From positions 16,746,757 to 16,810,756 of the forward strand of contig NC_068984.1 of NCBI RefSeq assembly GCF_001194135.2: a stretch of 64,000 nt of DNA, in the 5' to 3' direction. Source of the DNA: Octopus bimaculoides (lineage: Eukaryota). The number at the start of each line of letters is the position of its first letter. Within the stretch, counting starts at the first letter, position 1. Under the pieces are notes generated by a model. That model saw only the letters and a program-made list of their open reading frames with translations, did no database searches and was not told the DNA's origin. Below, in pieces: positions 13,168-58,452 of this stretch. Made by a program: the position numbers and the translations under genes.

Positions 13168-13438
13168 AGAAACGATATGCCGAGACATGGGACTACCACA
13201 TAACACCCTCCACTTTCCTCCAGTTTGATATCTCGATGGGCTGTGGTACACTATACAACACATTATACAGCGTAAAGCTGGAATATTCTATAGACACAGG
13301 CAAGACATGGCACTCTGTTATAGATGAGTGTGCACCACCAAAGTTTATTTGTAATGGCTACCATTTAAGTAGCCAATATGTTTCAGAACAACATATCAAC
13401 TGGACTCGTATTACTATCTATCTTCCTGCTGCCTCAAT
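13168..13438 (+). CDS. RELN: Reelin coding exon 1 in window (repeat 4A)
   Basis: ttttacag acceptor, AT|gtatgt donor; (E)KRYAETWDYHITPSTFLQFDISMGC...LEYSIDTGKTW...WTRITIYLPAAS; Asp-box-like YSxDxGxTW; phase 1 to phase 2. Confidence 0.95.
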
Positions 13439-14776
13439 GTATGTATTGATTTTATGTAATATTATTAATTACCTTAATGAGTTATTATTGTGCCTGAATA
13501 TTTTGTTCACTAAAAAAACAAACAAATAACTAATAAATTAATTTTCTATCTGATTTTTTAAACGAGCTGATATCTACATACAATCATGTAGTATAGAAAA
13601 AAATATGCTATGTAATTTAGAAGTGAGCTTGTATATAATCATAAAATTTGGTCATTAACTTTCATAAAAATTCATTATTCAACTCTATGAACACTGAAAC
13701 ATCATTTAAAACTTATTCCTAACTTCATCAATTACTTTATTTGGCTTCTTTTTAATGGAAACCTTTTGTGGGGAGACAATTTGTTCTGCAGATATTGTTG
13801 ATGAAAACTTTCTAGAAAGTTGAAGAAAATTAAACTTAGAAGAAAATGTTTGTCTGGGTTATGTACAATATGTTCCAAATTTATTTAAATTTACTTCATA
13901 TGTATATACTGTTAATTCTCCCCCTTTACCATTTAAACTGACCATATCTGGCCCAAATATTCTGTTTTATGTTCAAACAAGCCAGATCTGGTCTCTCACA
14001 TTTACCCTACAATGTCATTCTAAAAATAAACAATCACATCATTGAGATCTCAAAGCTACAAGATAATGCATGATTTATTCAAAATAATGTGAATAAGTAT
14101 TACACTTGACAGAGTAGTCTGAATGCTGAAAGGTTAGAATGTACAGTGCTGAAAAAAGAAACCAGTTACCATATTTCTGTTGAGATGCTCTGTGTTTCTT
14201 TCAATTAATTTTAAATATAACAAAGAATTTAGTAAAATAACATAGTTATCATTAAGCTGATGTTAGGAACATAAACTGTGACTAAGGTTTGGTGGAAGAT
14301 TTTAATTCAAAACTTATGAAAACAAGACATTTGTTCCACAGAGGCAGTTTCAGCCAGGTTGGTATCGAAAGGGTTAAAGGATTAACTTTGTTATACATGA
14401 ATATATTTGCTTTCTTCAATAAGAAACAGCCTATATTGTCATAAACAGAAGTGCTTCTAATTTACTGTGAAAGGGCTGATCAGTTAATATGCCAACAAAA
14501 AGTTATTGTTCTTAAGGCAGAATAACCTGACAATTGTTGTAGATCTTTAAGATTTGCTTTTCCTTTGAATGATGTCTTTCATTTTTGACCAGCAAATGGG
14601 TCATTTGTTTAGAGACTGTTTATCATGTATTACCAGACACTCACACAGGCACACACAGATACAATATCACACACACATTTAAGTACTTAGAATATTTTAT
14701 TCCCTTATTTCCATTTCTTATAAATATTGTAAACGGATTTTAAATTTCAGTGTTTCTTATTATTTTTAAATGTACT

Positions 14777-15002
14777 AAGGTGGCAAGCCGGCAGAATCAT
14801 TAGCATGCCAGACAAAATGCTTAGCGGTATTTCGCCTGTCACCATGTTCTGAGTTCAAATTCCACCGAGGTTGACTTTACCTTTCATCCTTTCGGGGTTG
14901 ATAAAATAAGTACCAGTTGAACACTGGGGTCGATGTAATCGACTCATCCCCTCCCCAAAAATTGCTACCCTTCTGGCAAAATTTGAAGCCATTATTATTA
15001 TA
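14777..15002 (+). mobile_element. SINE-A (tail 2, (ATT)n end)
   Basis: Same head and core, tail CCCCTCCCCAAAAATTGCT...AAATTTGAAGCCATTATT; second copy 27067-27295. Confidence 0.85.
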
Positions 15003-15079
15003 AGTATTTATTGATGTTACCCATCTTGGATTTGTAAATTTTGTTTGTAATTCTTAACATGACCTTTTCTCTGTATCAG

Positions 15080-15220
15080 TTCTCCAAACACCAGATTCCG
15101 GTGGTTTCAGCACACCGAAAGTCCTCGAGGTGATATTTGGGCCTTGGATAATGTATATCTAGGAGCAGGTTGTCCTTGGTTATGTTCAGGCCATGGCTAC
15201 TGTGATCAAGGGAAATGTAT
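15080..15220 (+). CDS. RELN: Reelin exon 2 (end of repeat 4A, start of EGF)
   Basis: ctgtatcag acceptor, gtgagt donor; SPNTRFRWFQHTESPRGDIWALDNVYLGAGCPWLCSGHGYCDQGKC; 141 nt, phase 2/2; absent from ORF track. Confidence 0.96.
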
Positions 15221-15804
15221 GTGAGTAATGTTTTTATTTATTCATTGTTTTAGCCTCTACATTTCTAGAAAACCTGTTTAATTCTGGTAAGGATACATCA
15301 TCTTCCTCATCATCATCATCATCATCTAATATGTTTTCCCTGCTGACATGAGTTTAACTGTTTGATAGGACCTAGCTAGCTGCAAAGCTACACTGAGCTC
15401 CTATGTCAGCTTTGGCATAGTTTCTACAGTATGGCTGGATGCCCTTCCTGCTGCCAACCATTTTACAGTGTGTATTGGGTGCTTTTTTTGTGCCATTGGT
15501 ACAAGTGAGGTTGTCAAGTAACTTTCAAAACAGGAAAAAAAATGCTTATTCAATGTTCTTTCATAAACTCTAATCAATGATTTAGTTTCTACTATTAGGA
15601 CACTAAATGGTACTCCATCAGTTATGACAATGAGGGTTCCAGTTGATCCAATCAATGGAAAAGCCTACTTGTGAAATTAACATACAGTTGGCTGAGCACT
15701 CCACAGACACATTCCCCCTTAATGTAGTTCTCTGCCAGCTCCTTCTCAAATTAGTTAGTTAATCTACATTACTCCATAAGGAGCAAAGGGCCACAAACAT
15801 TTCA

Positions 15805-16200
15805 TGCCAATTGAGGTAGCCCAAGGAAATAGGCTACCTCCTTGATTTCAGACCAAGAGAGACTGATTGCTTTTGCTTCAACCTTCATGCATCCTTTCCA
15901 GGTCTTCTTAGGTTGTCCAACCATGCTCTTTCCTTCAGATTGCCAGTCTGACATTTGTCTTGCAATGTTGCTTTCAGGTCTCCTTAGAGTGTGATCAATC
16001 TCGCCCCATTTCCTTTTCAGAATTTCTTGATTGATGGGAGTTTGGGTTATTTCTGTCTCAGACTTCTGTTTGAAATTTTGTCTGGCAACCAGATCTTGAG
16101 GAGGTAGCACAAACATTTGTGTTCTCAGATTAGATACACTAAATCTATTTTCTACTCTTTCAAGCAGCACTATTTTATCTCCACAATCCATCCACCTCCA
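15805..16200 (-). mobile_element. Old RTE LINE C-terminal fragment (second RTE family)
   Basis: EILKRKWGEIDHTLRRPESNIARQMSDW...GQPKKTW resembles RTE W.WIGHTLR...GRPK.TW. Confidence 0.75.
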
Positions 16201-16380: not shown

Positions 16381-16558
16381 ATGTGATAAGGGTTTTCTGC
16401 CACCCAATTGCGTACCTGAAAAAACTCTACGAATGAATCTAAGAGACGATTTTAGTTCTGAAAGTCTTGACTACAATAAATGGCAAGAATTATATGGAGG
16501 TGAAGTTTCTGACATATGTGGCCACTTGGTATCAGGAAATTCCTTAGTATTTGCAAAG
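16381..16558 (+). CDS. RELN: Reelin exon 3 (EGF end, repeat 4B start); GC donor
   Basis: tttcaccag acceptor; CDKGFLPPNCVPEKTLRMNLRDDF...CGHLVSGNSLVFAK; ends AAG|gcaagt, phase 0 matching next exon. Confidence 0.9.
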
Positions 16559-19545: not shown

Positions 19546-19745
19546 GATTTACTACGGCTTGTTGTCACAGAGAATATGGACACAACCATGATTAACAATA
19601 TTGAGTTCTTCTTCAAATATGCTTGCAAGGGAGAATCACTTGCATGGCCACGTCGGGAGAGTGTACTGCTGCAATACTCTATTAATGGTGGCATCACGTG
19701 GCATTTACTACAGGAAATCCATTACAAGAATGACTCCAACACACG
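19546..19745 (+). CDS. RELN: Reelin exon 4 (repeat 4B)
   Basis: cattatag acceptor, CG|gtaaat donor; DLLRLVVTENMDTT...SVLLQYSINGGITWHLLQEIHYKNDSNT. Confidence 0.93.
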
Positions 19746-21146: not shown

Positions 21147-21223
21147 CTTCTTCAGTGTATTTTTACCTCCATTAGCCAAAGCCAATGCAACAAAATTCAG
21201 ATTCTGGCAACCAAAGCATGGAG
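21147..21223 (+). CDS. RELN: Reelin exon 5 (repeat 4B)
   Basis: gttcttcag acceptor, G|gttagt donor; FFSVFLPPLAKANATKFRFWQPKHG; phase 2 to phase 1. Confidence 0.92.
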
Positions 21224-22386: not shown

Positions 22387-22549
22387 GTTCAATGAAGTCA
22401 ACATGGGCAATAGATAACTTTTTTGTTGGAACTATGACACTCAACCCAAACATGCTTGATGACAAATTTGAAAAACCATCATTAGATCAAGGTCTGTGGC
22501 AGTTTTCAAACAATGGAAAACTTGGGTCATATTGTGAATTCAGCAGACG
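22387..22549 (+). CDS. RELN: Reelin exon 6 (repeat 4B/5A junction)
   Basis: ttatag acceptor, CG|gtacgc donor; SMKSTWAIDNFFVGTMTLNPNMLDDKF...GSYCEFSR. Confidence 0.94.
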
Positions 22550-25236: not shown

Positions 25237-25351
25237 GGAAAGCACTCGAACTGCAGGCAGCTCAGCTTTGGTATTCAAAAGGGGAACTGGAGAACATTCT
25301 ATTGTTACGAGAGATTTGGATATTGGACCTATGTCAGTTGTGCAATTTGAT
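25237..25351 (+). CDS. RELN: Reelin exon 7 (repeat 5A)
   Basis: ttacag acceptor, GAT|gtaaga donor; ESTRTAGSSALVFKRGTGEHSIVTRDLDIGPMSVVQFD. Confidence 0.94.
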
Positions 25352-27870: not shown

Positions 27871-28091
27871 ATCAATGTTGGTTGTGGTGCCAGTTCAACT
27901 CACAAATATCCTGTACGTCTGGAATATTCTGTAAATGGTGGTAAAACATGGCAGTTGATTGTTCCTAATTGTGCTGATTATGCTTTGGCTCGTTGTGATG
28001 ACCAAACACAACCAACATCGATATATTATTCTGGCACAACCAAATATTGGAGAAGAATTATCATTCCTTTAGATGGACTTCATGCTTGTGG
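27871..28091 (+). CDS. RELN: Reelin exon 8 (repeat 5A)
   Basis: attctgtcag acceptor, GG|gtatga donor; INVGCG...PVRLEYSVNGGKTW...YYSGTTKYWRRIIIPLDGLHAC. Confidence 0.95.
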
Positions 28092-30879: not shown

Positions 30880-31169
30880 TGCTATTCGCTTCCGTTGGAC
30901 ACAAGGATACATTCCTCACTTTGACTATGCCCCAGAGTGGGCTATTGATAATGTGTTTATTGGAATGATGTGCCTTAGTAATTGCAATGGACATGGAAGT
31001 TGCGGGAGCTCAATGTTGTGTGAATGTGATGAGGGTTATGGAGGAGACAGCTGCACTCCCCTCCAACAACACCCCACCTCTATGAAAGAAGAGTTTAAGG
31101 AACCAGTGCTGGGTGGATCAAGTGCAGTTCGAGATTACTTTCAGAAACCATCTTCACAGTTGCTTGAAG
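30880..31169 (+). CDS. RELN: Reelin exon 9 (repeat 5A end, whole EGF, 5B start)
   Basis: poly-T...aaacag acceptor, G|gtaact donor; AIRFRWTQG...WAIDNVFIGMMCLSNCNGHGSC...CECDEGYGGDSC...MKEEF. Confidence 0.95.
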
Positions 31170-31452: not shown

Positions 31453-31609
31453 CACAAACTGCATTGGATGAGAAAAAATGGTCTATTTGGAGCAATGGCC
31501 GTATTACACCTAAAGAGTGTGGTCTTTTAATCAGAGGTGCAAGTCTGTACTTTGGAGAAAATGGTGACAGAGTTCTTATTAGCAAAGACCTAGATTTGTC
31601 TCGTGTCAG
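31453..31609 (+). CDS. RELN: Reelin exon 10 (repeat 5B)
   Basis: ctctaacag acceptor, AG|gtagaa donor; QTALDEKKWSIWSNG...CGLLIRGASLYFGENGDRVLISKDLDLSRV. Confidence 0.94.
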
Positions 31610-33727: not shown

Positions 33728-33986
33728 TATTGTTCAATTCTTCCTGCGACTTGGTTGTAAAGCCTCTCCTCCCAGCACAGGTACCCCTCCAGTGTATGTC
33801 CAATATTCAGTCGATGGTGGAATTACATGGCATACCTTTGAGCAATTTGACTTTTCCTATGAAAGTAACAAACCTGAATACATTGTTCTTCATCTGCCTG
33901 AGAAAGCTCGAACAAATTCTACCCAGCTGCAATGGTGGCAGCCATCAACCGATGGTACTTTCACTGAACAATGGGCAGTCGATCAG
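33728..33986 (+). CDS. RELN: Reelin exon 11 (repeat 5B)
   Basis: ctttcag acceptor, CAG|gttggc donor; IVQFFLRLGC...VQYSVDGGITW...LPEKARTNSTQLQWWQP...QWAVDQ. Confidence 0.94.
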
Positions 33987-34547: not shown

Positions 34548-34549
34548 TG

Positions 34550-34592
<43 letters not shown>

Positions 34593-34599
34593 CACACAC

Positions 34600-34630
<31 letters not shown>

Positions 34631-34673
34631 TATATACACATACACATACACACACACATACATACATACATAC

Positions 34674-34712
<39 letters not shown>
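34548..34712. repeat. Compound (TA)n/(CA)n/(TACA)n microsatellite, representative of many
   Basis: Similar tracts at 1-47, 2147-2214, 8657-8696, 21475-21660, 24409-24457 (GAT/GAC), 31240-31292, 42655-42822, 52379-52418. Confidence 0.97.
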
Positions 34713-36087: not shown

Positions 36088-36229
36088 ATTTATGTTGGTG
36101 GAGATATTGATGGCACTGAAATGCTTCTGGATGAACCAACGATTCCTCAAGACACAAACTGGCTGCTTTATCCTGGAGGAGAAATTAAAAAAGTCTGTGG
36201 GTCTGTTACAGATGCCCTCTCCTTTGAAG
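36088..36229 (+). CDS. RELN: Reelin exon 12 (repeat 6A start)
   Basis: tgtgcag acceptor, G|gtatac donor; IYVGGDIDGTEMLLDE...NWLLYPGGEIKKVCGSVTDALSFE. Confidence 0.94.
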
Positions 36230-37782: not shown

Positions 37783-37890
37783 ATGAAGGTAATATGAGGT
37801 ATGCAATATCCAGAGATGTGACCACCTATTCGGGGGCATTCATTCAATTTGAACTTTCAATGGGTTGCAAAGACACTAAACAATGCTATG
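37783..37890 (+). CDS. RELN: Reelin exon 13 (repeat 6A)
   Basis: cttttcaag acceptor, G|gtaagt donor; (D)EGNMRYAISRDVTTYSGAFIQFELSMGCKDTKQCY; phase 1/1. Confidence 0.93.
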
Positions 37891-41575: not shown

Positions 41576-42184
41576 AATGGGTGTTCAAACTGGAAAATGT
41601 TCTGGATACATAATATCAGAAAAGAAAATTGGATGGTAGAAGATACTTTCCTAAGGTGGTATGCAGTTGGGAATCAAACTTAGTACCACTTAACTGAAAA
41701 GCGAATTTAACTATGCTTGAACCCAAGGTGTATTATTACAACCTGAACATAGATAGCACTGCAATGCTTTTTTATAGATAATACTCTATGTAGTTTGTTT
41801 TATCTCAAGAGAGTCATTATGCCAATAATAAATACACACTGGTTCTATTTCAATTCTGTTATTATTTGTCAATTTGTTAACATTTAACAAACAAACTAAT
41901 CAATTGTTTGATTAATCAATCAATCAGACAGGTTTATCACAGTCCTCCTGTCACCATCTGTGACCTCATCAATGAGATATTCTCTCAACTCCAAGTAGCT
42001 GTCTGTCTAAGTGTATTACAGCATGTCTATTTTTTACACTGGAGAGGAAGCATAACAACCAGAATTGTTTATCTTCAGCTCATTCTTGTTTTATGTAACT
42101 TACCAAAGACTTTTCAGTCTAGCCCATCCAATTTTCTTTTCTGATATTATGTATCCAGAACATTTTCCAGTTTGAACACCCATT
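41576..42184. repeat. Perfect 61-bp inverted repeat, 487-bp spacer
   Basis: 41576-41636 is the exact reverse complement of 42124-42184. Confidence 0.95.
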
Positions 42185-42701
42185 TTAAGACGATAGGATA
42201 TGATTTAGGGAATAACAGCTGCTGTTTCTAGCAGATTTAGAAACTGAGTATAATCAGTATTGGCTCAACCAGAATTATTTGATAAACTGGTTAAACTGGT
42301 TTATTTTCATTAGCATTAGTTTGTAATGCTAATAAAAATCTTATATGATTTTACTGCTTCTGGATTCTACCTCAAATATAATTAATAGTTCTCTTAAATT
42401 ATAAAATAGAATATTATCAAGTACTTGTGACATGAAACAAAAGCCAAATGCTCTGTCATTGACAATAGATCTTATAAATAAAAGAATTCTGACTTACATT
42501 TATCAAAAATTAAAATATGAACAGCTGCTTAAATCTTACAATATTACTATTCAGCAAGATTATTGTCTTGCAAAAATACATTACAACTGCTCTAATATAT
42601 TCTTTATTTAGTTCAATTATGTAACTGAAATCTCATCTCAGATTTGTGTGCATATGCATGTGCATATATGTATGTATGTATGTATGTATGTATATAGGTC
42701 C

Positions 42702-42740
<39 letters not shown>

Positions 42741-42749
42741 GTATGTATG

Positions 42750-42802
<53 letters not shown>

Positions 42803-44597
42803 AATATGTATATATATATATACTTATTTTGTTGTCATCTTTTGCTGAACTACTAAGTTACAGAGATGTAAACAAACCAACACTGGCTGTCTAGCAGTGG
42901 GGGAAGACAAACATACACACAATGGGCATCCACAGTTTCTGTCTACCAAAATTCACTCACAAGGCATTGGTCAACACCCAGGGCTATAGTAGAAAACACT
43001 TGTTGAAGTTGCTGCACAGTGGAGTTGAACCCAAAACCACATGCTAGCAAAGCAAGCTTATTAATCACACTGCCATGCCTATCTGTTTCATGGAGATGAT
43101 TATTTTTACGTTTGGCTCTTGGGGAAGGAACAATGCTGGTAGCCTTCATAGACCTTCTGAGATCAGTGAGATTGATGGCATTAATATTCCACTTAAACTA
43201 TTTCAAGTCTTCATCTACAAGAAAGACATGTATAGGAAGGTAGTTACAGTTAACCAATGTTCTGGAATGGAAGAAGTAGAAGTTATGGCTATTACAGGAC
43301 TAGTTGGGCTAGAAGCAACAAGAGTGATGACAGGAGGAGAGACATGCGAGAGGAGTCTGGGAGAAGATAGTACAAGGCCAGCCAGATCCAAGAAGCAGAG
43401 GCCATTATAGTAGTGGGAGAAAAGGCAGGACTAAGCAACAGGCTCTCAGTGGGTCAGAGACTGAGACATATTTTTGAGTGGCTTTATGCTTATCAATCAC
43501 GTGACTGTAACGAAGGAATATTTGATTGGTTGACAGAACTAAAATCTGTATGAAATTCAAATACAAAAATATTTGAGTCGTACAGTTTGCATGAAGCATT
43601 GCCTGGTATATACCTTCCATCTGCTTGTTTCAGTCATTAGACTGGGGCTCTAACTTGAAGAATTTTTTAGTCAAATGAACTGACCCCAGTACCTATTTTC
43701 TTTTTTAAGTCTGGTACTTATTCTATTGGTCTCTTTTGCCAAACTACTAAGTTATGGTGACATAAACACACCCACACTGGTTGTCAAGCAGTGGTGGTGG
43801 ACAAACACAGACACAAACATGCACACACACATAATGGGCTTTTTTCAGTTTCTTTCTACCAAATTCACTCACAAGGCTTAGGTTGTCCTGTGGCTATAGT
43901 AGAAGACACTTGCCCTAGGTGCCATGCAGTGGGACTGAACCCAGAACCAAATGTTTTTAATTATTATAGTTTTCTGTAAAGTCAAAATAATGCAAGTTAC
44001 AAGAAATAATATATGTCAATGATTTGTACATCCTGAAGACGGGGTTCTAACCCTGACATATTGCAGCAGCAAATTAAAGTACAAGCTATCGACTAGTATT
44101 ATTTCTAATAGCTTGCATTATTTTGGCTTTATAAAAAATAAATAATAAAAATATTTTCATAATTAACAATAAAGCTTTAGGTGTTTTTATTCAATAAACA
44201 CTCACAACACCCAGTCTGGGAATTGAAACAACAATCCTACGACCGCGAGTCCACTGCCCTAACCACTGGGCCATTGCACCTCCACACACATACACACACA
44301 CACACATCATCATCATCATCATTGTTTAACGTCCGCCTTCCATGCTAGCATGGGTTGGACGATTTGGCTGAGGACTGGTGAACCAGATGGCTGCACCAGG
44401 CTCCAATCTGATCTGGCAGAGTTTCTACAGCTGGATGCCCTTCCTAACGCCAACCACTCCAAGAGTGTAGTGGGTGCTTTTACGTGCCACCGGCACGAAG
44501 GCCAGTCAGGCAGTACTGGCAACGGCTACGCTCAAAATGGTTTTTTTTACATGCTGCCTGCACAGGAGCCAGTCCAGCGGCACTGGCAACGACCTCG

Positions 44598-45633
44598 CAT
44601 ATATGTTGGACACATAAGAGGTGCAGCAACATCAAAGGCAGGTTAACTAGCAAGTTAGTTTTTGTTTGTGGCAGATGTTCAGGTGCAATAAAGACTGCAA
44701 ACAAACAGGAAACAACTTCTATCTCATTCCAGGGTGAAAAACTAGAGGTAGTCGATAGCTTCCGCTATCTGGGCGACCAAGTTAGTAGTGGGGGTGGGTG
44801 CGCTGAAAGTGTAGCTGCTAGAATAAGAATAGCCTGGGCAAAGTTTAGAGAGCTCTTACCCCTGCTGGCGACAAAGGGACTCTCACTCAGAGTAAAAGGC
44901 AGACTGTATGACGCATGCGTACGAACAACCATGCTACATGGCAGTGAAANNNNNNNNNNNNNNNNNNNNNNNNNNNNNNNNNNNNNNNNNNNNNNNNNNN
45001 NNNNNNNNNNNNNNNNNNNNNNNNNNNNNNNNNNNNNNNNNNNNNNNNNNNNNNNNNNNNNNNNNNNNNNNNNNNNNNNNNNNNNNNNNNNNNNNNNNNN
45101 NNNNNNNNNNNNNNNNNNNNNNNNNNNNNNNNNNNNNNNNNNNNNNNNNNNNNNNNNNNNNNNNNNNNNNNNNNNNNNNNNNNNNNNNNNNNNNNNNNNN
45201 NNNNNNNNNNNNNNNNNNNNNNNNNNNNNNNNNNNNNNNNNNNNNNNNNNNNNNNNNNNNNNNNNNNNNNNNNNNNNNNNNNNNNNNNNNNNNNNNNNNN
45301 NNNNNNNNNNNNNNNNNNNNNNNNNNNNNNNNNNNNNNNNNNNNNNNNNNNNNNNNNNNNNNNNNNNNNNNNNNNNNNNNNNNNNNNNNNNNNNNNNNNN
45401 NNNNNNNNNNNNNNNNNNNNNNNNNNNNNNNNNNNNNNNGTGCGGGTGACACGTAAAAGCACCCACTACACTCTCTGAGTGGTTGGCGTTAGGAAGGGCA
45501 TCCAGCTGTAGAAACTCTGCCAAATCAGACTGGAGCCTGGTGTTGCCATCCGGTTTCACCAGTCCTCAGTCAAATCGTCCAACCCATGCTAGCATGGAAA
45601 GCGGACGTTAAACGATGATGATGATGATGATGA
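44598..45633 (+). mobile_element. Young 5'-truncated RTE-type LINE spanning a gap
   Basis: Open frame WTHKRCSNIKGRL...DSFRYLGDQVSSGGG...WAKFRELLPLL...TMLHGSE; 3'UTR ends ...GGACGTTAAAC(GAT)n. Confidence 0.9.
44950..45439. other. Assembly gap (N run) inside an RTE LINE copy
   Basis: LINE ORF on left, LINE 3'UTR on right. Confidence 1.
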
Positions 45634-45864
45634 TATATACATATGCGTCAGACATTTCCCATCTCTAAATGAAGAATTAAAATATTTTACTATAGTTTTG
45701 TACTTGCATGGCAAGACCAAACGATTTCTCTGCAGTTTTCTGAGGACTAATGCTAAACCAAATAATACCAGCTATATTTTCCTTGAATTTGAAATAAATT
45801 CTGTTTATGAAATCTATGATCAATAAAGATTTAATGAGCAATGTTTAACTTATCTTCTTTTTAG

Positions 45865-46033
45865 GTATGGATCTTCAGTTTTCTCTGGATATGGGAGTCA
45901 CATGGGAACTTTTTCAGACTGCCTGCACTCCTTCCGATATAGACTGTGCCAGCTATCATCAGAGCAGTCGATTTATGTCTGATATTTACCATGGATGGAA
46001 TAGAATTACATTGCCTGTCCCTTATTATGCAAA
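45865..46033 (+). CDS. RELN: Reelin exon 14 (repeat 6A)
   Basis: ctttttag acceptor, AA|gtaaga donor; MDLQFSLDMGVTW...CTPSDIDCASYH...GWNRITLPVPYYA. Confidence 0.94.
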
Positions 46034-46290
46034 GTAAGACAGCAATATCTTTTTAACATTTTTGTTTTGTTTTTTTTAACTTGTTTCAGCCATTGAACTG
46101 TTGCCAAGCTGGAGCACTGCCTTGAAATGTTTTAGTCAAACAGTGCTCTCTTTTTATTTCATGTCTGGTATTTATTCTATCAGTCTCTTTTGCTGAGCTG
46201 CTAAGTTACAAGGACATAAAAAAACAAAACCAGTTGTCAAGTGTAAACACAGGCTCAAAATGTACACACACTTATCTGATGGGCTTCCAC

Positions 46291-46477
46291 CATTAGCATA
46301 GCTAGTGGGGGGTGCCTTAGGGGCAGTTCGCCCTGGGCAGTTCACCCTGGGCAGCCCTTTCAGTGGGGCACCACTTTTGAGTCTGCTGTAGGGAATATGT
46401 GTTTTTTTTTTTGTGGTTTCAGGGGGTGGAAAACAGAAGGGCTGCCCTGGGTGGCACACACTCTAGCTATGCTAGTA
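46291..46477. mobile_element. hAT-like MITE nested in SINE-B, 8-bp TSD
   Basis: TIR tagcatagctag / ctagctatgcta; flanks gcttccac / gcttccat. Confidence 0.7.
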
Positions 46478-49012
46478 GCTTCCATACAATTTCTGTCCAC
46501 CAAATCCACTCACAAGGCATTGGTCACTCTGAGCCTACAGAAAACACTTGCCCAAGGTGTCATATAGTGGAACTGAACCTGAAATCACTTAGGTGCAGAG
46601 TGAGCTTCTTAACCACACAGCAATGTTTTCAAAAGAAAAGAACACTAATTTCAGAAATTATAACAAAACACATGAAGTATTAGATTAAATTGAATTTTGT
46701 ATGTATAAATTTTAAAATATATTTCAATTTTCACATTGGTAAAACTTGACATTTTCAATTCTCTGTCATCATTTGCTTCTCTGTTCAGTACAAAAAACTT
46801 ATTTTTCAGACTAGTCATACCTTGAACTCAGTACAGGTTATAGAGCATATTCTTTTCTCATTTAATGGGATCCTTCTGGCAACAATAGAATGTTAGTGTC
46901 TGAACAATCATATCATGCTAGAAACTCTGAGTAGCTATTGATTGTGTCACCAGCTTTGTGCAAATATATTTACTCTATCTACTTTTCTATATATTACTCT
47001 ATCTATGTCCCTCTTGAAAACATCTTTTTTCTTTCTTTTCCTCTTACTGATCTTGGTGTTATTTCTATTAAATAATTTGTTATACATATGACTAGGTGGG
47101 AATGATTTATTAATTTGTGTTTAGAGGTTGCTGGAAATACTTGATCTTATTTAAGCTAAAGTAATGGATGAACCAAATTATATTCTATTTTCTACATATT
47201 ATATTCTGTTTTCAGCAATTACTGCTCTTTCTTAAGAAATTGATCTCATCTTTATATTTGCATTTACTTAATGTCCCATAATAATAACTGACAGTTTTAT
47301 CAAATGTTAAATTATCTGTTTAAATGTTAAATATTCTTTTATTTATGTTACTGATTTACAAATATACCTGTAGGGTGGTTGAAATCTTTATCAGTATACA
47401 TAAGGTTTTCATTCAGTTTTCTGTAAAGTCAATGTCTATCTGCCAACAGGTAACATCTAAAAAGTTGACTGATATTAGTGGTTATTATGGTGTTGAGGCC
47501 AAGTTCATTCAAACGTGCTTATTGGGGCTATTTTAATCTTATCTAACTTTCAGCTAGTCTTGTGTGAAAATGCAAAACCATCATCCCTATATAAACCTGT
47601 TTTTTTAAGGTTTTAAATATACTTTTGAATATATCTAGAATATGTAATCCAATTGTGAAGACACATGGTTTAATGGTTAGAGTATTTGGCTCACAATCAT
47701 AAAGTTGTAGGTTCAATTCCTTGACTGAGTGGCACATTGTATTCTTGAGCAAGGCACTTCATTTTATATTGCTTTAGTTTACTCAGTTGTAAGGAGTACT
47801 CCTATCTGTCACATCCTAAATGTTCCACTGGATCAAGGATGAGGGGACTGAGAGGGTGTCTTATGTTTACATAAACACCTAAAACAAATAGTGAAAACAT
47901 GATACATGTTACCAAACCATACTCACTAGTGAATGACAGCTGGCTATGTTATCTAATCAAATCACATACCTTAGCTTCATCAAAGTTCTCCATCCTTACA
48001 TCAACAAAATAGGGCTTTTCTGACAAACAATTATATCTACATTATTGCTGTTGATAATGAATGTTTCTTGCCAAATCCCAGTCGTCTGTTGAAGAAAGGG
48101 TTGGAAATTGATGGATACAATTCAACAATGTCAAAATATGAGAACCTGAATTTACTATTAAACCAACCAACTATATTATTATTCTGGTTCCACAGTTGCC
48201 AGTTGATGATTTTTCAAATATTTTTGCAGATATTAAGTAAAATCTATTTTCTAACTACACTAAATTTGTTCTTTACCAAGAATATAACACTGCTCATGGG
48301 GTTAACTGTGAAATTATCTTTGTGGTCTTTGAAGGTGGTGTATTTTTACATTTGGTTAGACATTCTATCTTCTTATTACACTTCAGGCAAGTAACAAAGA
48401 TGTTTCAATATCATAGGTGCTACTATTGTTTGTGTAATGTCGTTTGTTGGAAGTCTGCTGTAGTTATCTATATCTAGTTTATATATAAGTTTAAAACTTT
48501 ATCAAAAAATGTGTATAATTAAAGATGTTGAATTGTCAAAAGCATTAGAATACAGTAGAATACAGTAAATAGAATGTCTCACTCTATACATTCTGGATCT
48601 CTACACTCTGATTTCAAATCTCACTGAGATCAACTTTGCATTTCATCTTTCAAGGGTCAATAAATAAAGTACTCTAGCAAGGGCAGTGGATTGGTAGAAA
48701 TCTTAGAAGCACCCATGCTGGTGTTGTGTAGAAAAGCACTTGTTCAGGGCCACATAAAAAGTGCCTGCGCTGGTTCCACATAAAAAGCACTCATGCCAAG
48801 GCCTCACAAAATGCACCGGTGTTGGTGCCATGTATAAAGTATCCATGCTGGTGCCACGTAAAAAGCACCCAGTACACTCTGTAAAGTGGTTGGCATTATG
48901 AAGGGCATAACATAACCATGCCAAAACAGACAATCGGAGCTTGAGTAGCTCTCTAACTGGCCAGCTCCTATCAATCCATCCAACTTGTCAGACCACCACC
49001 AGCATGGAGAAT

Positions 49013-49597
49013 CTTTTCTACTCTTGGCACAAGGCCCGAAATTTTGGGGGAGAGGTCAGTCAATTAGATCGACACCAGTATGAAACTGAGCTATGTCTCC
49101 AGCAGAACCTCCATCTGAAGTGGTTTAACAGAGTACCAAACACCGACCTGAGGGAAAGGGCCAACCAGGAGCCCATACATGTTCAGATTAGATGAAGGAA
49201 ATGGAGATGGATCGGATACACACTGCGGAAAGAACCCTCAAATGTGACACGACAAGCACTTGACTGGAACCCACAGGGGAAAAGGAAGCGAGGACACCCA
49301 AAGCAGACATGGAAGCGGAGCATTTTGGACAAGTTCAGGACCAACGGCCTGACGTGGGAAGGAGCCAAGAAACACGCCAATGACCACAAAAAGTGGAAAA
49401 TAACTGTTGAGGCCCTATTCTCCACAAGGGGCAAAAAGGATTAAGAGAGTATGCAACTAGTACTTACTTTACCGACCCTGAAAGGATGAAAGGCAAAGTC
49501 AACCTCAGCAGAATTTGAACTCAGAACGTAAAGACAGATAAAATACTGCTAAGTATTTCACCTGGTGTACTAACATTTCTGCCAGCTCACCGCCTTG
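49013..49597 (-). mobile_element. SINE-A (tail 3) interrupted by RTE fragment; 14-bp TSD
   Basis: ccagcatggagaat at 48999-49012 and 49598-49611; decayed tail-3 copy at 50695-50915+. Confidence 0.88.
49083..49447 (+). mobile_element. RTE LINE 3' fragment inserted in a SINE; 6-bp TSD agtatg
   Basis: WRWIGYTLRKEPSNVTRQALDWNPQGKRKRGHPKQTW; agtatg at 49077-49082 and 49448-49453. Confidence 0.85.
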
Positions 49598-50920
49598 CCA
49601 GCATGGAGAATGGACATTAAATGATGATATTAGAGCAAAGGACAAGATTCGTTGTGGTAATGGTTTTGGCTATTTGCATTTTGAATTCAAATTCTGCTAA
49701 TGGCCAGGCTATATCACCCAACAAAGGAAATATCCTGTTCAAACTGGCATTTGACCAGCTTTGGTAGGTAGGCCCACTACAAGCTTAGATCAAGCTGACA
49801 ATGTTATAATGAAACTTTCACCCAACAATAGATTGACCATGGCTGAATAGTACAACTAAGCACTGTGTATAAGAAGCTCATTATTATCAACATTTGACCT
49901 TTGGGTATCATAAGAAGAATCATTGAGACTTGGTCTCTGGTCTGAGAATAACTTCCTTCCTTCTTCATACTAGTCTTGGAGCCCCTCCAAATGGTCATGG
50001 TTGCTGCACTTCTTCCTGTGGGTAAATCATAAAAAATTAAAATATGTATTGTAATCTTATATGCTATTCAATCCATTGATATTATTGATTTCTAAGTTAG
50101 CCCAGAATTTTATGGGAAAAGGAGAGTAGCCATTATTGCTATGGCTACACATGTGGTACAAACGGTTATTTCCTGGCTATCAATTTATACAGTTCAAAAT
50201 GAATATTGATTTTTATTGATGAAAACTTTCTCCAATTAAATTATTTAATTATGCTAGATGTAATTAAGGTCAGGCTCACAGATATAAAGTATAACAATGC
50301 CAGTGTTTCTGGTAAAGTTCCATAAAGACTTTCTCAATTGACATAATAATAGGGAAATAGTTTTTCTCACATTTTCTATTCCACTTTGTTGTTCTATAAT
50401 TATTCTTTAATGATAGTTTTTGAATTGATAGTGAGAGGAACAAGATATTCAAATGCCAAAACTTGCTTTTTCAATCCATTAAACTTTCTTAACAACTTCA
50501 ACAAAAGCCAGTAAAATACATGTTGGAAAAATCTGAAATACGTAGCAAATAACAAATTTTATATTTGTCACTAAATTCATTCTGCTACACTATCATTATT
50601 ATTATTATTATTGTTATTTGTCCAACCCATGCCAGTATGGAAAATGGACGTTAAATGATGATGCTGATAATGATGACAACAATGATTTTCAGGACACTGA
50701 ACTGCTAGAATCGTTAGCAAGTCAGACAAATTGCCTTGTGACATTTCATCTACCTTTACATTCTGATTTCAAATGTCAACTTTGCCTTTCATCCTTTCAG
50801 GATCAATGAAATAACTATCAATCAAGCAATGGGATTGATGTAACTGTTTAGTCCCCCTTCCCCACAATTTCAGGCCCAATGCTTATCACAGAAAGAATTA
50901 TGATTATTATTATTATTATT

Positions 50921-51478
50921 GAGTGAGAGAGCACTGCATGCCATCAAAGTGACACTGGGGTAAAATATACGAAGCCCAGTACACCCATCATGACTACCCA
51001 TCTGATAAGAGTATACCAGGCACATGCATCACAACCTTATGTGTGCAACATAATGGTCTCATATCAAGATAAACAGCGCATGACCTTGCAGGTGAGGGCC
51101 CAGTTAGAATTTTCTTCATGTTGAGTAACCCATCCCACTCAAAAGGTCCTTGAATAAAGGTTGTTTGAGGATGTCGAACGAAATACCCATGTTTCCAAAG
51201 ATGAATTATCCAAACCCCAAAGAATTCCTCTCAACACATGGCTATGATGCTCCCCCACTACTTCTGCTCATGATCAGAGATGCACATATCGTCAGCCACC
51301 AAGGGACATGCTCAACTGGTTACGGTCGAACAACTGACAAGCAAATCTGTGGTTTTGAACAGAATATTTGCTGTAGCCCATCTTTTATACCAAGACAAAA
51401 CAATATACATGATAGCACCTCCAATCAGTTAAGATAAGAAGCCATGAGAACCACTGTCTGATGCCACATCAGGGCATT
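50921..51478 (-). repeat. Unclassified ~550-bp insertion bounded by (ATT)n on both sides
   Basis: GC-richer block with sharp edges in ATT microsatellite; no convincing ORF; repeat status inferred, single copy here. Confidence 0.5.
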
Positions 51479-51769
51479 TTATTATTATTATGATTAAGGG
51501 GGTAAATGACAACGAAGATGATGGTGATGATATATATATATATATATATATCATCATCATCATCATCATCATCATCATCGTTTAACGTCCGCTTTCCATG
51601 CTAGCATGGGTTGGACGATTTGACTGAGGACTGGTGAAACCGGATGGCAACACCAGGCTCCAATCTAATTTGGCAGAGTTTCTACAGCTGGATGCCCTTC
51701 CTAACGCCAACCACTCAGAGAGTGTAGTGGGTGCTTTTACGTGTCACCCGCACGAAAACGGCCACGCTC

Positions 51770-52378
51770 NNNNNNNNNNNNNNNNNNNNNNNNNNNNNNN
51801 NNNNNNNNNNNNNNNNNNNNNNNNNNNNNNNNNNNNNNNNNNNNNNNNNNNNNNNNNNNNNNNNNNNNNNNNNNNNNNNNNNNNNNNNNNNNNNNNNNNN
51901 NNNNNNNNNNNNNNNNNNNNNNNNNNNNNNNNNNNNNNNNNNNNNNNNNNNNNNNNNNNNNNNNNNNNNNNNNNNNNNNNNNNNNNNNNNNNNNNNNNNN
52001 NNNNNNNNNNNNNNNNNNNNNNNNNNNNNNNNNNNNNNNNNNNNNNNNNNNNNNNNNNNNNNNNNNNNNNNNNNNNNNNNNNNNNNNNNNNNNNNNNNNN
52101 NNNNNNNNNNNNNNNNNNNNNNNNNNNNNNNNNNNNNNNNNNNNNNNNNNNNNNNNNNNNNNNNNNNNNNNNNNNNNNNNNNNNNNNNNNNNNNNNNNNN
52201 NNNNNNNNNNNNNNNNNNNNNNNNNNNNNNNNNNNNNNNNNNNNNNNNNNNNNNNNNNNNNNNNNNNNNNNNNNNNNNNNNNNNNNNNNNNNNNNNNNNN
52301 NNNNNNNNNNNNNNNNNNNNNNNNNNNNNNNNNNNNNNNNNNNNNNNNNNNNNNNNNNNNNNNNNNNNNNNNNNNNNN
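51770..52378. other. Assembly gap (N run)
   Basis: N run between LINE 3'UTR and (TA)n(GA)n. Confidence 1.
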
Positions 52379-52421
<43 letters not shown>

Positions 52422-53529
52422 GGAAGGAAAGTAGAGAAGTAAGAAGCACGGGGGCAGTGACAAGTGACCGAGACCTTTGACAATATACCTGTCAAGCCAG
52501 GTGAAATCATAGTCATGGCCGATGCCTGTGTCACATATCTGGCACAGAAAAGGCACCCTTTGAACTTTGGGCCTCAAGCCAAGTGAGGTCATAGTCATGG
52601 CTGATGCCGGTGTTTCATAACTGGCACCCATACCAGTGGCACCCACCACACTCTTGGAGTGGTTGTTGTAAGGAAGGGCATCTAGCCGTAGAAACCATGC
52701 CAAATCAGATTGGAACCTGATGCAGCTCCCCAGCTTAACAGTTTTCAGTCAAACTGTCCAACCCATGTCAGCATGGAAAACAGACGTTAAATAATGCGGA
52801 TGATGATAAGGATGATATAAAACAGGTTTCCATACAGTTTCTATCTACCAAATTTATTCACTAAATCATTGGTAAGCCCCAAGGCTAGTAGCAGATATTT
52901 TTCTAAGGTATCGCGGTGTGAATGAACCTGAAACCACATGATTGGTAAGTGAACTGTACTTGTTTAGCAAGTAATTTAATCTGAAATACCATGTTGAAGC
53001 TAAAAATAATCTCATTGTCAAAGACGTATTCTAGCTATTTAAAATACACATATTTTGTTAAGTTCACTTTTCCTCTTTTATTATTTTATAACCTGAATAA
53101 TAATAATGTGTAATTATTGTGTGTCAGTTTGTTTTGTTTTTTTATTATAAATTTAAGTTGCTTAACAGGTGATGAGGAGCTTGTTTCCTTGGTTTTATCT
53201 GTTTTTGCTTTGTACATGTATTGAATGAAATATGAGTCTCTATAATGTGAGAACAAAAAACAGTTGTTTCTGATACTCTGCTTCACTATTGAATACAATT
53301 TATCTTTATTATGCGATGTAGTAAAAGTGCATGAAGTGCGAATAACAGTTTATGTGCGTCTACAACAAACACATATACCCACATTCTCATACAGACACAC
53401 ATACACTCACTTGCATGTATACTCACACAGGCTCACACATGCACACACAAACATATACATGCATAAAATCCATTATCATTACATCCGTCTTTTCATACTT
53501 GCATTAAGGTGAACAGAATTTTTTCACCA

Positions 53530-54665
53530 CAGCATCTCTTCACTTGACTTTGTCGTTCATCTTCTCCTTTGTGAAGCTCAGCATTTTAAGAATATCTTTC
53601 ACCAGTGTCTTCCTTAGTCTTCCTCTTTCACATATTTTTCCCATTTGAATCACTTGGAACTTCTTTGCCCAACCATCATACTTTATAGACATCACTTAAC
53701 CATACCTGTGCAGCTCCATCTCTTGTACACTACACTAAATTCCTCTTAACCTCAGTTTTTCTCTCAGTTGATTTGTGCTCCACCACTCATAAACATTATA
53801 CAACCAATGATACATACTCCCTTCATTTCTTTCCATCTTTCACACATCCTTCACACTTTTTACCTGCAGTTCCCAATCACACAGTCATCCATATGTTTCA
53901 GTATCATAGTCCCTGTCATCTTCTCTGTGAGTCCCAACGTCTGTAGATCCTTTCTCACCACTTTGTCCCACATCTTCCTGGGCCACCCCTTCCACAATTA
54001 GAACTCAGCATTTCTTGATGCATCTGTCTTCATTCATACACATCACATGACCAAACCAGCACAGTCTTCTCTCTTGCGCACGATATCTGATGCCTCATAC
54101 ACCCAGTTTTTTTCTCAAATCACTTACACTCTATCATATATGCACATTGACATGACCCATCCAGCAGAGCATACTGGCTTCATTTCTTTCAAGCCTTCAC
54201 ATATCCTCAGTAGTCACAGCCCATATCTCACTGTCATGTAGCATAGCTGTTCGTACACAGGCATCATACAACCTACCTTTCACTCAGCAAGAGAGGCCCT
54301 TCATTACTAAAAGGGGTAGTAGTTCTTTGAATTTTGCCCAGCCTATTCTTATTATAGCAGCTATGCTTTCAGGACAACCTCCCCTACTATTAACTTGGTC
54401 ACTTAAGTAACACAAACTGTCTACTACTGCTAAGGATCCCCACTGACATTTGAGGGAGTCTATTTTTTTGGTACATTTCTGGTGATTAATATACCTGCAT
54501 ATCTGCCACACATAGACTACTTTCTTTGTTAGTCTTCCAGTGATACTGCTGCACCTCTTATGCATCCATTGCTTGCACTGGGTACACCTTATGGAGTTTC
54601 TGCTGACACCTTTTCTACATACTGAGCAAGACCATCTCCCTGAAGAGATCTGTGATTTGTCTATT
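53530..54665 (-). mobile_element. Decayed RTE-type LINE fragment, same family as 6307-7552
   Basis: WSCSVCRKGVSRNSIRCTQCKQWMHKRC...WAKFKELLPLL. Confidence 0.85.
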
Positions 54666-55079
54666 TTCCTACTTATCAATACTTTACTTTGGTCTGCTAA
54701 ATTAACTCTAAGGTCATTTGATTCCAGTCACAGAGAGAGGTGGGGGGTTGAGGTAATTATGCAGATAAACAAATTAAAACTATAACAGCTTGGGTATGAT
54801 ATACAAAATATGTATTCATGCAAACAGAAAGAAAGCAAAGACTGAAGACTTTCAGATGGATATTTAACTATAAATATATAGACATTTATACATATAAATA
54901 GTTCAAACTTACACAGAGTACAAAACGACAGAGAAAATTAAAGGGGAAGAAGTAAGGTGTTATAATTCCAACAGCTGTTTCTGGGGGCTTGGAGATCCAT
55001 CATAATGTTGGTGGATATAATTCACCAAAATATGCAGCACATAATGGAAACAAATAAACATTGTGTGTGTGTGTGTGCG

Positions 55080-55552
55080 CATATACTTTTTGTGTCTGGC
55101 ACCCATGCCAGTGGAGCGCTAACAGCACCATCCGAGCGTGATCATTGCCAGAGCAGCTGTCTGGCTTCTGTGCTAGTGGCACGTAAATAGCATCATTTGA
55201 GTGTGATTGTTACCAGCGTCGCCTTACTGGCACTTGTGCCCGTGGCACGTGAAAAAACATTTGAGTGAGGTCATTGCCAGTGCCACTGGACTGGCTCCTG
55301 TGCAGGTGGCATGTAAAAAACACCATTTTGATCGTGGCCGTTGCCAGTACCGCGTGACTGGCCCTCATGCCGGTGGCACGTAAAAGCACCCACTACACTC
55401 TCGGAGTGGTTGGCGTTAGGAAGGGTATCCAGCTGTAAAAACTCTGCCAAATCAGATTGGAGCCTGGTGTAGCCATCTGGTTTCACCAGTCCTCAGTCAA
55501 ATCGTCCAACCCATGCTAGCATGGAAAACGGATGTTAAACAATGATGATGAT
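55080..55552 (+). mobile_element. RTE 3'UTR-derived element with tandem ~60-bp units and (GAT)n tail
   Basis: GGCGTTAGGAAGGGYATCCAGCTGTA...CAACCCATGCTAGCATGG...GTTAAAC(GAT)n. Other copies: 6020-6245+, 15310-15530-, 24150-24460+, 32560-32740-, 39630-39870+, 41310-41567+, 44305-44597-, 48700-49630+, 51551-51769-, 52430-52810+, 58565-58710+, 59770-60000+. Confidence 0.85.
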
Positions 55553-55958
55553 AATCTATGTATATCTGTGGTTCTCAAACATTTTTTATCTATTTTTTTA
55601 TCTTTGATTACAATTCCATTCTAGTGGACCATTATAGTTATTTGATGTTTAAAAACTGGTTTGATAGATACTTCTGTAAAAATTCCTGTTTTGTTATTCA
55701 CACATTATTAACTTGTGTAGATTGAGCTATGTAAAACATTTGTGAAAGAAACCCATCTGTTTCTTGCAATAAACATCTAAGGCAAAATTTTTTCATGGAC
55801 CCTTAATATACTACTATGGATCCCCAAATTACTATTTTGTTTGCATGGACCCCAAAAATCACATATAGAATCCCTGGGGTCATATGGATTCTGGTTCAGA
55901 ACCATTGATCTATGTAAAAGATCACTAACTATATGGAAACTTTTATATTTCTGTCCAG

Positions 55959-56099
55959 ATCCAAGTCAACAAGATTCCGTTGGATCCAACATGCTCCTTT
56001 CAATAAACAGCATCATTGGGCACTTCGAGTGCTCTACATTGGCAAAAGATGCCCTCAGTTATGCAGTGGTCATGGTAATTGCATTGGACATGTTTGCAG
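55959..56099 (+). CDS. RELN: Reelin exon 15 (repeat 6A end, EGF start)
   Basis: ctgtccag acceptor, AG|gtaagt donor; SKSTRFRWIQHAPFNKQHHWALRVLYIGKRCPQLCSGHGNCIGHVC; 141 nt, phase 2/2. Confidence 0.95.
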
Positions 56100-57165
56100 G
56101 TAAGTCATTCTCTCCCATTGTCACATAAATAATCATTAAAACATAAAACATTACATAATCATGTGATCAACCAGACTAACAGATGTTGTTATACGTCACT
56201 GATCACAATGCACTTTTGCATCGTTTTAGCTTTTTGAATGATGCCACCCCACTGACTGGGGGAATAGGCCAACATTTCCTCTGATAAGAGGGCTCATCCA
56301 TCACAGGATCACAGCTGAGTGGACAGGAGCAATGTGAAATGAAGTGTTTTGCTCAAAAACACAATACACCACCCAGTCTGGGGATCAAACCCACAATCTA
56401 GTGATTGTGAGTGCAACACCCCTAACCACTAGGCCACACGCCTTCATAAAATATAGAAAATAAAAAAGTATATTTGTTTAATATCTATTTCCATGTTTAA
56501 TTTTTTTCTATACTATTTTTACATTTTATTATACTTTTCCTTTTTTTTTTTGTTATTTGCTTGTTTTATTCATTTCAATGTGAGATTTTCTAGATTTTTT
56601 TTATATTCTTTTAGAGAAGATTCTAAAACAAAACTCACTTTTCTGGAAACAAATAATCTCTTCATATTAGTTTATATTTGTTACTATTTATATCCCTGTA
56701 TAGTGCAGATAGTCAAAATTTAATATTGTGACTAAGCTTAGATTTAAATTATCATCAGTCTTTACACTTTAACCCTTTATCATTCAGATTATTCTGTCAA
56801 ATGCAATGCTTATTCATTCAGATTGCTTTGAATTAGTCATGCATTATCTTGCAGCTTTGAGGTTTCAATGATGTCATTGTTTATTTTTAGAATGACATTG
56901 AAAAGTAGGTGTGAGAGGCCAAATCTGACCAGTTTGAATATGAAATAGGCTGAATATTTAAGCTGGATATGGGCAGTTTAAATGCTAAAGGGTTAAAGAT
57001 GGATGCATCATCCAGATGACAGGGTGCTGTGTAAGAGTTAAAGGATTTCATTGTTCACACCTTGTTGGTATATCCAGAGTCAATTCTGTCAGTCTGTCAG
57101 TCCACCATAATCAGGAGTGTTTGCTCTTAAAATTATATTTAAGATTTTTTTTTTTTTGGTTATAG

Positions 57166-57346
57166 ATGTGATAGTAATTGGCAAGAAGAAGACTGCCATA
57201 AACCAAAGAACCCACTGCCAACCATTCTGAAAGACTCTTTTATGGACGCAGACATATCAGCTCAGAATTGGTTAAAAATTGCTGGAGCAAAGATAACTAA
57301 TACTTGCACAAATCTAGCCTCAGGAATGGCAATACATTTTATTGGA
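57166..57346 (+). CDS. RELN: Reelin exon 16 (EGF end, repeat 6B start)
   Basis: ttatag acceptor, GGA|gtaagt donor; CDSNWQEEDC...LPTILKDSF...NWLKIAG...CTNLASGMAIHFIG. Confidence 0.95.
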
Positions 57347-57669
57347 GTAAGTTTGAGTTTTCTCTATACTAAAAGTTCTCAACTATTTATTACCTGTGAA
57401 CCCTTTTATTTACCTACTTTTGATTCATGTTTTACTCAGGTAGACCCACCTAGTCATTCAATGATTTTTAAAAGTCCAATTATAATTTTATAATTAGATG
57501 CTATTAGGAATTGCATTGAAAAAATTAAGATATTTTGTTTATTGAAGAAGTATGACTAATTTATTGAGCATAAATTTTAACAAAATCTTATATGGGCCCC
57601 CAAGGATCATATGGGAATTGATGTCAGGTGATGAAGTGGGCAATTTGACAAGACCCTATTTTGGACAGG

Positions 57670-58046
57670 CAGCACTGGATTAACCATTAAGCAAAATAAG
57701 CATGTGCTTAAGGCATCAAAGTAAGGGGAGACTCCACAGAAATGGTAAATGGTTTATAGCACAAAAGAAATTATTTTTAACTTGCTAAAATAATATCCAG
57801 GGTACCATACTTCTACTAAGTATAGAAGCAGGTGTGTTGCATAAGATTAATTTTGAAGATCTGATCATAGACTTAGCAATTAAAAAAAGTAGAAGAAAAC
57901 TATACAGAAATAAACATTATCTTTCATATTACTGTTAGTTTTGTTACATTTTGAAAAATATAAATTTATTTTATGGTTTATTATTTATATTTTGAATTAC
58001 ATATATATGGGGGCACCAAAATGTGGGTCTACGTGGATCAGCCTTG
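57670..58046. mobile_element. Decayed hAT-like MITE, 8-bp TSD tggacagg
   Basis: tggacagg at 57662-57669 and 58047-58054; degenerate ends cagcactggatt / gatcagccttg. Confidence 0.5.
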
Positions 58047-58258
58047 TGGACAGGCAGCCAGCAAGAATGGACATGTGGACAGAGTCCTTCAATATTCTAT
58101 CTGCTAGCCAATGATTTAGGGCAGAATGTTCTCTGAGTTTCACAGCAAGTTGTAATCGGCGGTTGAGGAATTCCTTTTGCTGTTATTTGCCATGTCCAGA
58201 CGTTTAGTCCTTTAGACTTAAATGTTATGTCCTATTTTACTCTTCTTTTCTCTTTCAG

Positions 58259-58452
58259 GGCTGCAGTCGAATTCTCATCAGTACAGATTTAGATTTGAGA
58301 GATTCAAAATTCATTCAGTTCTATTTCATGTTTGGTTGCAACACAGCTCCCCTGATTCGAAACCAAGGGGTCCTTGTTGACTATTCAGCAGATGGTGGTA
58401 TTTCTTGGTCCCATATAACAGAACTTTACTACAACCAATACAAAGCACCAAA
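58259..58452 (+). CDS. RELN: Reelin exon 17 (repeat 6B); gene continues beyond window
   Basis: tctttcag acceptor, AA|gtaagt donor; GCSRILISTDLDL...FIQFYFMFGC...RNQGVLVDYSADGGISW...YYNQYKAP. Confidence 0.95.

Follow-up and report, generated by a model that had tools for sequence, protein, structure and literature searches.

Seventeen intact exons in a 64-kb octopus window point to a reelin orthologue and to an early origin of its eight repeats

Reelin positions neurons in vertebrate brains and is commonly described as having arisen in vertebrates. Is this neuron-positioning job ancient, or is it a novelty of the vertebrates? A 64-kb stretch of Octopus bimaculoides DNA (contig NC_068984.1; hereafter the window) makes this question testable in a cephalopod, as it shows how the receptor-binding region is divided into exons and offers a candidate docking lysine (codon 56005-56007) and a dimerising cysteine (codon 28087-28089). 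Between positions 13168 and 58452 its plus strand very likely carries, intact and in succession, 17 exons of the octopus reelin (RELN) orthologue, a gene that extends past both window ends. The exon chain covers the C-terminal two thirds of R4A through most of R6B (R4A being subrepeat A of repeat 4, and so on). While a 2025 review still denies the existence of an invertebrate reelin, the octopus locus and its relatives show otherwise: an eight-repeat protein with individually recognisable repeats appears to persist in an animal whose brain is large and layered.

The window has a G+C content of 35% and contains four runs of N (2215-2945, 12719-12859, 44950-45439 and 51770-52378). Many short reelin-like segments appear on the plus strand in the list of its open reading frames (ORFs). 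Sixteen coding segments, some of them short and absent from this list, were located by tblastn with eight reelin fragments, and a 17th (21147-21223) came from a motif scan; splice sites were picked by phase, consensus and homology. Joined in frame, the 17 exons give 982 codons with zero stops. By our own estimate, made without a dedicated tool, about 7% of random codons would be stops at the local composition, which puts the chance of such a stop-free run at about 1e-31. An earlier reading of the window, made from the sequence alone, had proposed an intact 17-exon frame of some 1000 codons and had remarked that several exons were missing from the ORF list. Both statements stand: the same coordinates were recovered, the first acceptor (13168) and the last donor (58452) coinciding exactly with the start and end given there, and the short coding segments were retrieved by tblastn or, in the case of exon 5, which is too short for the list, by the motif scan.

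Among the 16 introns bounded by these exons, 15 follow the GT-AG rule. For intron 3 the donor is best set at a putative GC site (AAA|gcaagt, 16558/16559), making a GC-AG pair. The GC donor was preferred because the alternative GT donor of exon 3 at 16546, which also keeps the frame, removes four conserved residues (VFAK), whereas the GC site aligns without a gap. Two further alternatives were rejected. An acceptor at 37789 would make exon 13 two amino acids shorter and open a two-residue gap against mouse and the molluscs, 37783 being gap-free; a shorter exon 9/10 junction (31105/31473) has a poor acceptor, and the linker of the molluscan relatives at this place is even longer. The alignment with scallop reelin has no gap in any column where two exons meet.

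On either side of the chain (1-13167 and 58453-64000), motif scans and relaxed tblastn, the latter with flanking sequence of vertebrate, arthropod, hemichordate and molluscan origin, turned up no convincing additional reelin exon; the gene thus runs on past the window. Exon 1 is preceded by an intron that contains the gaps at 2215-2945 and 12719-12859. The window yielded no exon for the beginning of R4A, and the larger of these two gaps could in principle hide it. An exact look-up of the ORF at 13137-13529 in public assemblies returned no match.

That the product of this locus is a reelin orthologue we consider practically certain. A rough concatenation of the ORFs already matched the Pfam reelin-subrepeat model PF21471 over six stretches (E=1.5e-96), along with Asp-boxes. 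When the three units of the spliced model were scanned separately, each gave two PF21471 matches (E 7e-60 to 3e-70) around an EGF match, and an Asp-box (BNR, PF02012) was found in the second subrepeat of each unit (SINGGITW, SVDGGITW and SADGGISW). The domain order is thus subrepeat A-EGF-subrepeat B three times over, with the first A and the last B incomplete in the window. The sequence of the mouse reelin R5-6 crystal structures (PDB 2E26/3A7Q) gives a collinear match (E=1.7e-118), and the 982-residue model aligns as one piece (1-982) to full-length reelins of four phyla, collinear with their positions ~1600-2700. The motifs that the sequence-only reading had matched in order to vertebrate R4A, R5A and R6B are all present and in that order (RYAETWD, GEHSIVTRDL, LHACG and GGCSR...FIQFYFMFGC...RNQGVL), and the best matches are reelin rather than some other BNR/EGF protein.

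Identity to the model is highest for scallop (56.0%), periwinkle (55.1%) and Solemya (54.7%), followed by 45.7% and 45.6% for horseshoe crab and hemichordate, taken in that order, and 44.5% for shark (vertebrates, represented by shark and lizard, being at about 44%). Seven of the eight molluscan reelins compared fall within 52-56%, the remaining one (Elysia) being at 45.8%; the range for the other phyla is 44-46%. The introns also contain fragments of retrotransposon ORFs, at 44484-44949 (+), 54284-54679 (-), 15802-16191 (-) and 49244-49444 (+). The best named matches of the first of these (155 codons, beside the gap at 44950-45439) are uncharacterised Octopus bimaculoides proteins (71-96% identity), and some of its relatives carry the reverse-transcriptase domain PF00078. 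The guess that the DNA was probably octopus is supported: judged from these similarities the locus is molluscan and almost certainly octopus, probably from O. bimaculoides or a close relative.

To place the individual repeats, neighbour-joining trees were built with all eight A and B subrepeats of the full-length reelins of shark, hemichordate and horseshoe crab, which have eight EGF modules each at the same spacing. The A and B trees each resolve eight positional clades, and the subrepeats of the window fall into those expected for their position (bootstrap 98 for R4A, 97 for R5A, 99 for R6A, 94 for R4B, 99 for R5B and 100 for R6B). A previous comparison with vertebrate fragments, whose reference set lacked some repeats, had given the positional counterpart as the best match for five of the six subrepeats, and neighbour-joining trees from a smaller set, also without some repeats, had placed all six by position (bootstrap 90-99). 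The repeat-by-repeat orthology proposed from the sequence alone is supported because the eight-repeat trees put the six window subrepeats one-to-one in the R4-R6 clades (bootstrap 94-100). Since subrepeats group by position across phyla, the divergence of the eight repeats is older than the protostome-deuterostome split, and the eight-repeat reelin itself predates it. Farther out, very long proteins of the choanoflagellate Salpingoeca infusionum (P0020) and the sponge Sycon ciliatum (P0024/P0187) match reelin R5-6 with E-values of 1e-145 to 1e-176; from these matches the subrepeat module itself seems older than animals with neurons.

For the functional residues we aligned 23 reelins from invertebrates and vertebrates, using the mouse R5-6 construct as an index (Cys2101 at position 156, Lys2360 at 415, Lys2467 at 522). 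The contact between Lys2467 and three aspartates in the ApoER2 module LA1 is critical, and Cys2101 takes part in the dimerisation of reelin (PMC4882317); salt bridges to LA1 are described for Lys2360 as well as for Lys2467 (PMC5452030). The octopus keeps the equivalent of Cys2101 (LHACG), a cysteine near-universal among the 23 reelins, as well as that of Lys2467 (APFNKQHHW), in the same alignment column as the vertebrate lysine. This loop (55993-56019, exon 15) is the most vertebrate-like (compared with APF[DE]KQQTW) among the invertebrate reelins analysed, and its exact form occurs in none of the 17 others; the likeness may represent either retention or convergence. The description of repeats 4-6 as the signalling core, made in the sequence-only reading, fits the octopus protein as to Lys2467 and Cys2101 but not as to Lys2360, which is replaced by Glu.

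Several observations weigh against reading the locus as an intact reelin gene with a vertebrate-like mode of action. The window holds three of the expected eight repeats and neither terminus, and the exon junctions are predictions from homology and from consensus sites, with a GC donor required at one of them. The Lys2360 equivalent is Glu (SFEDEGNMRY), the IEK lysine being vertebrate-only among the 23 reelins. The Lys2467 loop varies in invertebrates, with no basic residue in echinoderms, the hemichordate and some gastropods; the strand that follows it reads WALRVL (its WALRV at 56017-56031, exon 15), where vertebrate reelins, and the majority of other subrepeats, have WA[IL]DN; and a snail (Biomphalaria) 'reelin-like' protein was detected in haemocytes, hinting at non-neural roles (PMC6281880). 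In echinoderms and the hemichordate the loop contains proline, and in most molluscs and chelicerates the lysine is shifted or absent (in chelicerates it stands one residue earlier). Because the loop is so variable among invertebrates, the ancestral reelin may have lacked LA-module binding, and the presence of the lysine in octopus could be a coincidence. A sequencing error was considered for WALRVL and rejected. We regard this strand as real because no frameshift recovers WAIDN and because the end of R6A deviates at this place in all invertebrate reelins compared except lobster (vertebrates do not deviate).

Could the exon chain be an artefact of assembly, with contigs misjoined across the runs of N? 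Two gaps lie within the gene, one (44950-45439) in intron 13 (37891-45864) and the other (51770-52378) in intron 14 (46034-55958), and both have a high-copy repeat beside them, a typical site for scaffold misjoins. The right flank of the former and the left flank of the latter are inverted copies of an interspersed element of ~190 bp; with this repeat bordering both gaps, the assembly therefore broke there. Exons 1-13 lie on one contig, exon 14 alone on the middle one and exons 15-17 on the third, all in the order, strand and phase to be expected. When aligned to mouse R5-6 and to scallop reelin, the model spans both gaps, with 0 residues missing or duplicated at the junctions of exons 13 to 14 and 14 to 15; no coding sequence is lost in either gap, and a misjoin is very improbable. 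Equally hard to credit is a paralogue, either lineage-specific or some other protein combining reelin-type repeats with BNR and EGF modules. Proteins with reelin-type subrepeats are indeed common (1,717 representative matches, including bacterial-looking ones on short contigs, sponge and choanoflagellate), and three repeats alone are visible in the window. On the other hand, every subrepeat clusters with its positional counterpart and not with other repeats of the same protein, and a single collinear alignment joins the model to the full-length reelins of four phyla. Only slightly less remote is the prospect of a pseudogene, an unexpressed or decaying remnant of the reelin gene, which would agree with the failure to retrieve any cephalopod reelin protein from the protein collections, even though these include O. 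bimaculoides UniProt proteins. Such a remnant would hardly retain 982 codons in 17 exons with neither stop nor frameshift, workable splice sites at every junction, and cysteines, Asp-boxes and hydrophobic cores conserved throughout, at 56% identity to scallop with gaps confined to loops.

The serious rival concerns function rather than identity: a true reelin orthologue may act mainly as a structural or immune-related matrix protein, in a non-neural matrix or haemocyte role, without LDL-receptor-family/Dab signalling and without positioning neurons. To this we give not far from an even chance. It agrees with the lack of Lys2360 in every invertebrate compared and with the variable Lys2467 loop, with the 'reelin-like' protein in the Biomphalaria haemocyte proteome (PMC6281880), and with the occurrence of reelin-repeat domains in sponge and choanoflagellate, animals or protists without neurons. 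It is less easily reconciled with the closeness of the octopus APFNKQHHW to the vertebrate APF[DE]KQQTW, with Lys in the same position, or with the conserved dimerising cysteine; besides, mammalian reelin evokes a response through fly LpR1/2 and Dab (PMC9454125), and therefore the receptor side exists in protostomes.

A role in reelin signalling, as pictured from vertebrate reelin, would take the following form. The exons would encode a segment of a very large secreted glycoprotein of ~3,400-3,600 residues, composed of jelly-roll subrepeats that bind calcium, which would probably form a disulfide-linked dimer via the conserved cysteine of repeat 5 (mouse Cys2101 position). An LA module in a receptor of the LDL-receptor family could accommodate the lysine at the end of R6A (Lys2467 position) in its acidic calcium cage, and this docking would then recruit a Dab adaptor. 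By analogy with the vertebrate complex, receptor binding through this lysine is a possibility that we put forward tentatively; a role in positioning neurons in the octopus brain, likewise argued by analogy, is considerably more doubtful. The retention of the vertebrate-type docking loop and of the dimerising cysteine suggests that a reelin/LDL-receptor-family/Dab pathway may operate in cephalopods. The full proposal, in which this pathway may layer or position neurons in the large brain that cephalopods evolved independently and an eight-repeat reelin ancestral to bilaterians was lost in flies and nematodes, is a speculative one that we think unlikely to hold in its entirety.

Table 1. Exons and intronic assembly gaps of the octopus reelin locus (window coordinates)
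Feature	Position	Strand or location	Content	Evidence
Exon 1	13168..13438	+	R4A, C-terminal two thirds (KRYAETWD...LPAAS)	tblastn, splice sites, R4A clade bootstrap 98
Exon 2	15080..15220	+	R4A end (TRFRW...WALDNV) and first half of EGF4	tblastn, splice sites, Pfam EGF match
Exon 3	16381..16558	+	Second half of EGF4 and R4B start; putative GC donor	Splice sites, R4B-orthologue alignment
Exon 4	19546..19745	+	R4B middle, Asp-box SINGGITW	tblastn, splice sites, Pfam
Exon 5	21147..21223	+	R4B (LPPLAKANATKFRFWQP)	Motif scan, splice sites, alignment
Exon 6	22387..22549	+	R4B end (WAIDNF) and R5A start	tblastn, splice sites, alignment
Exon 7	25237..25351	+	R5A (GEHSIVTRDL)	Mouse R5-6 match, tblastn, splice sites
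Exon 8	27871..28091	+	R5A; Cys2101 equivalent (LHAC, codon 28087-28089)	tblastn, splice sites, residue conservation
Exon 9	30880..31112	+	R5A end (IRFRW...WAIDNV), whole EGF5, linker	Mouse R5-6 match, tblastn, splice sites, Pfam
Exon 10	31453..31609	+	R5B start	Mouse R5-6 match, tblastn, splice sites, alignment
Exon 11	33728..33986	+	Remainder of R5B (Asp-box SVDGGITW; WAVDQ)	Mouse R5-6 match, tblastn, splice sites, R5B clade bootstrap 99
Exon 12	36088..36229	+	R6A start	Mouse R5-6 match, tblastn, splice sites
Exon 13	37783..37890	+	R6A; Glu at mouse Lys2360 position	Splice sites, gap-free alignment to mouse and molluscs
Assembly gap	44950..45439	Intron 13	Left flank retrotransposon ORF, right flank ~190-bp repeat	
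Exon 14	45865..46033	+	R6A middle; sole exon on inter-gap contig	Mouse R5-6 match, tblastn, splice sites, alignment
Assembly gap	51770..52378	Intron 14	Left flank inverted ~190-bp repeat copy, right flank (TA)n/(GA)n run	
Exon 15	55959..56099	+	R6A end, Lys2467 equivalent (APFNKQHHW, codon 56005-56007), first half of EGF6	Mouse R5-6 match, splice sites, residue conservation
Exon 16	57166..57346	+	Second half of EGF6 and R6B start	Mouse R5-6 match, tblastn, splice sites
Exon 17	58259..58452	+	R6B middle (GGCSR, FIQFYFMFGC, RNQGVL, Asp-box SADGGISW)	Mouse R5-6 match, tblastn, splice sites, R6B clade bootstrap 100

The window contains at least 14 copies of the ~190-bp element that borders the two gaps, in both orientations and at 70-99% identity; its sites include 6314-6497, 41383-41566, 44305-44496, 45440-45640, 51559-51753, 55368-55555 and 58565-58710. 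A tRNA scan and an Rfam scan of the window gave no match, and neither a tRNA-like head nor an Rfam family was detected for the element. Long dinucleotide microsatellites of the types (CA/TG)n, (TA)n and (GA)n occur at 12400-12470, 34540-34760, 42640-42800, 52379-52420 and 59650-59760, the fourth of them abutting the right edge of the gap at 51770-52378.

How new is such a gene? In an exhaustive representative search with mouse R5-6 as the query, the full-length matches named as such by their sources were the elephant shark reelin and the 'reelin-like' proteins of hemichordate, horseshoe crab, nemertean, crinoid, amphioxus and krill, and further named matches came from sea urchin, starfish, Ciona and leech. 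Full-length reelin-like annotations are already public for molluscs, spiders, lobster, echinoderms, hemichordate and others. The novelty of the octopus gene is therefore modest, and lower than the sequence-only reading had implied; the locus is a well-preserved one, useful for an open evolutionary question, and not a new type of system. Searches of the protein collections retrieved no cephalopod reelin protein, and literature searches found no paper describing a cephalopod or molluscan reelin, the molluscan 'reelin' mentions there being mostly to the unrelated short reeler domain of shell proteins.

Compared with R4-R6 of vertebrate reelin (mouse R5-6 structures 2E26 and 3A7Q), the octopus protein has the same A-EGF-B units, collinear over 982 residues, and shares the Asp-boxes and the equivalents of Cys2101 and Lys2467 (APFNKQHHW versus APFDKQQTW). 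It differs by Glu at the place of Lys2360, by WALRVL instead of WA[IL]DNV, and by a linker after EGF5 that is 6 residues longer than in mouse. The closest sequences, with the same repeat order and one-piece alignment, are the molluscan 'reelin-like' proteins in RefSeq/UniProt (Mizuhopecten yessoensis, 3499 aa, Littorina saxatilis, Mercenaria, Tegillarca, Solemya, Ruditapes and Elysia, besides a Dreissena fragment), whose full-length members combine an N-terminal reeler domain (Pfam PF02014) with eight repeats. Unlike the octopus sequence, they belong to other molluscan classes, are computer predictions for which no functional study came to light, and have the lysine of the R6A loop shifted or absent. 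The reelin-like proteins of other invertebrates (Tachypleus, spiders, lobster, krill, Ptychodera, echinoderms, Tubulanus, Helobdella, amphioxus and Ciona) show a lower identity to the octopus model, about 37-46%. In the Dreissena polymorpha 'reelin-like isoform X1' (P0003, 585 aa), Kunitz-type inhibitor domains (PF00014) are joined to the middle of R4A, which is probably a gene-model fusion and not a real architecture.

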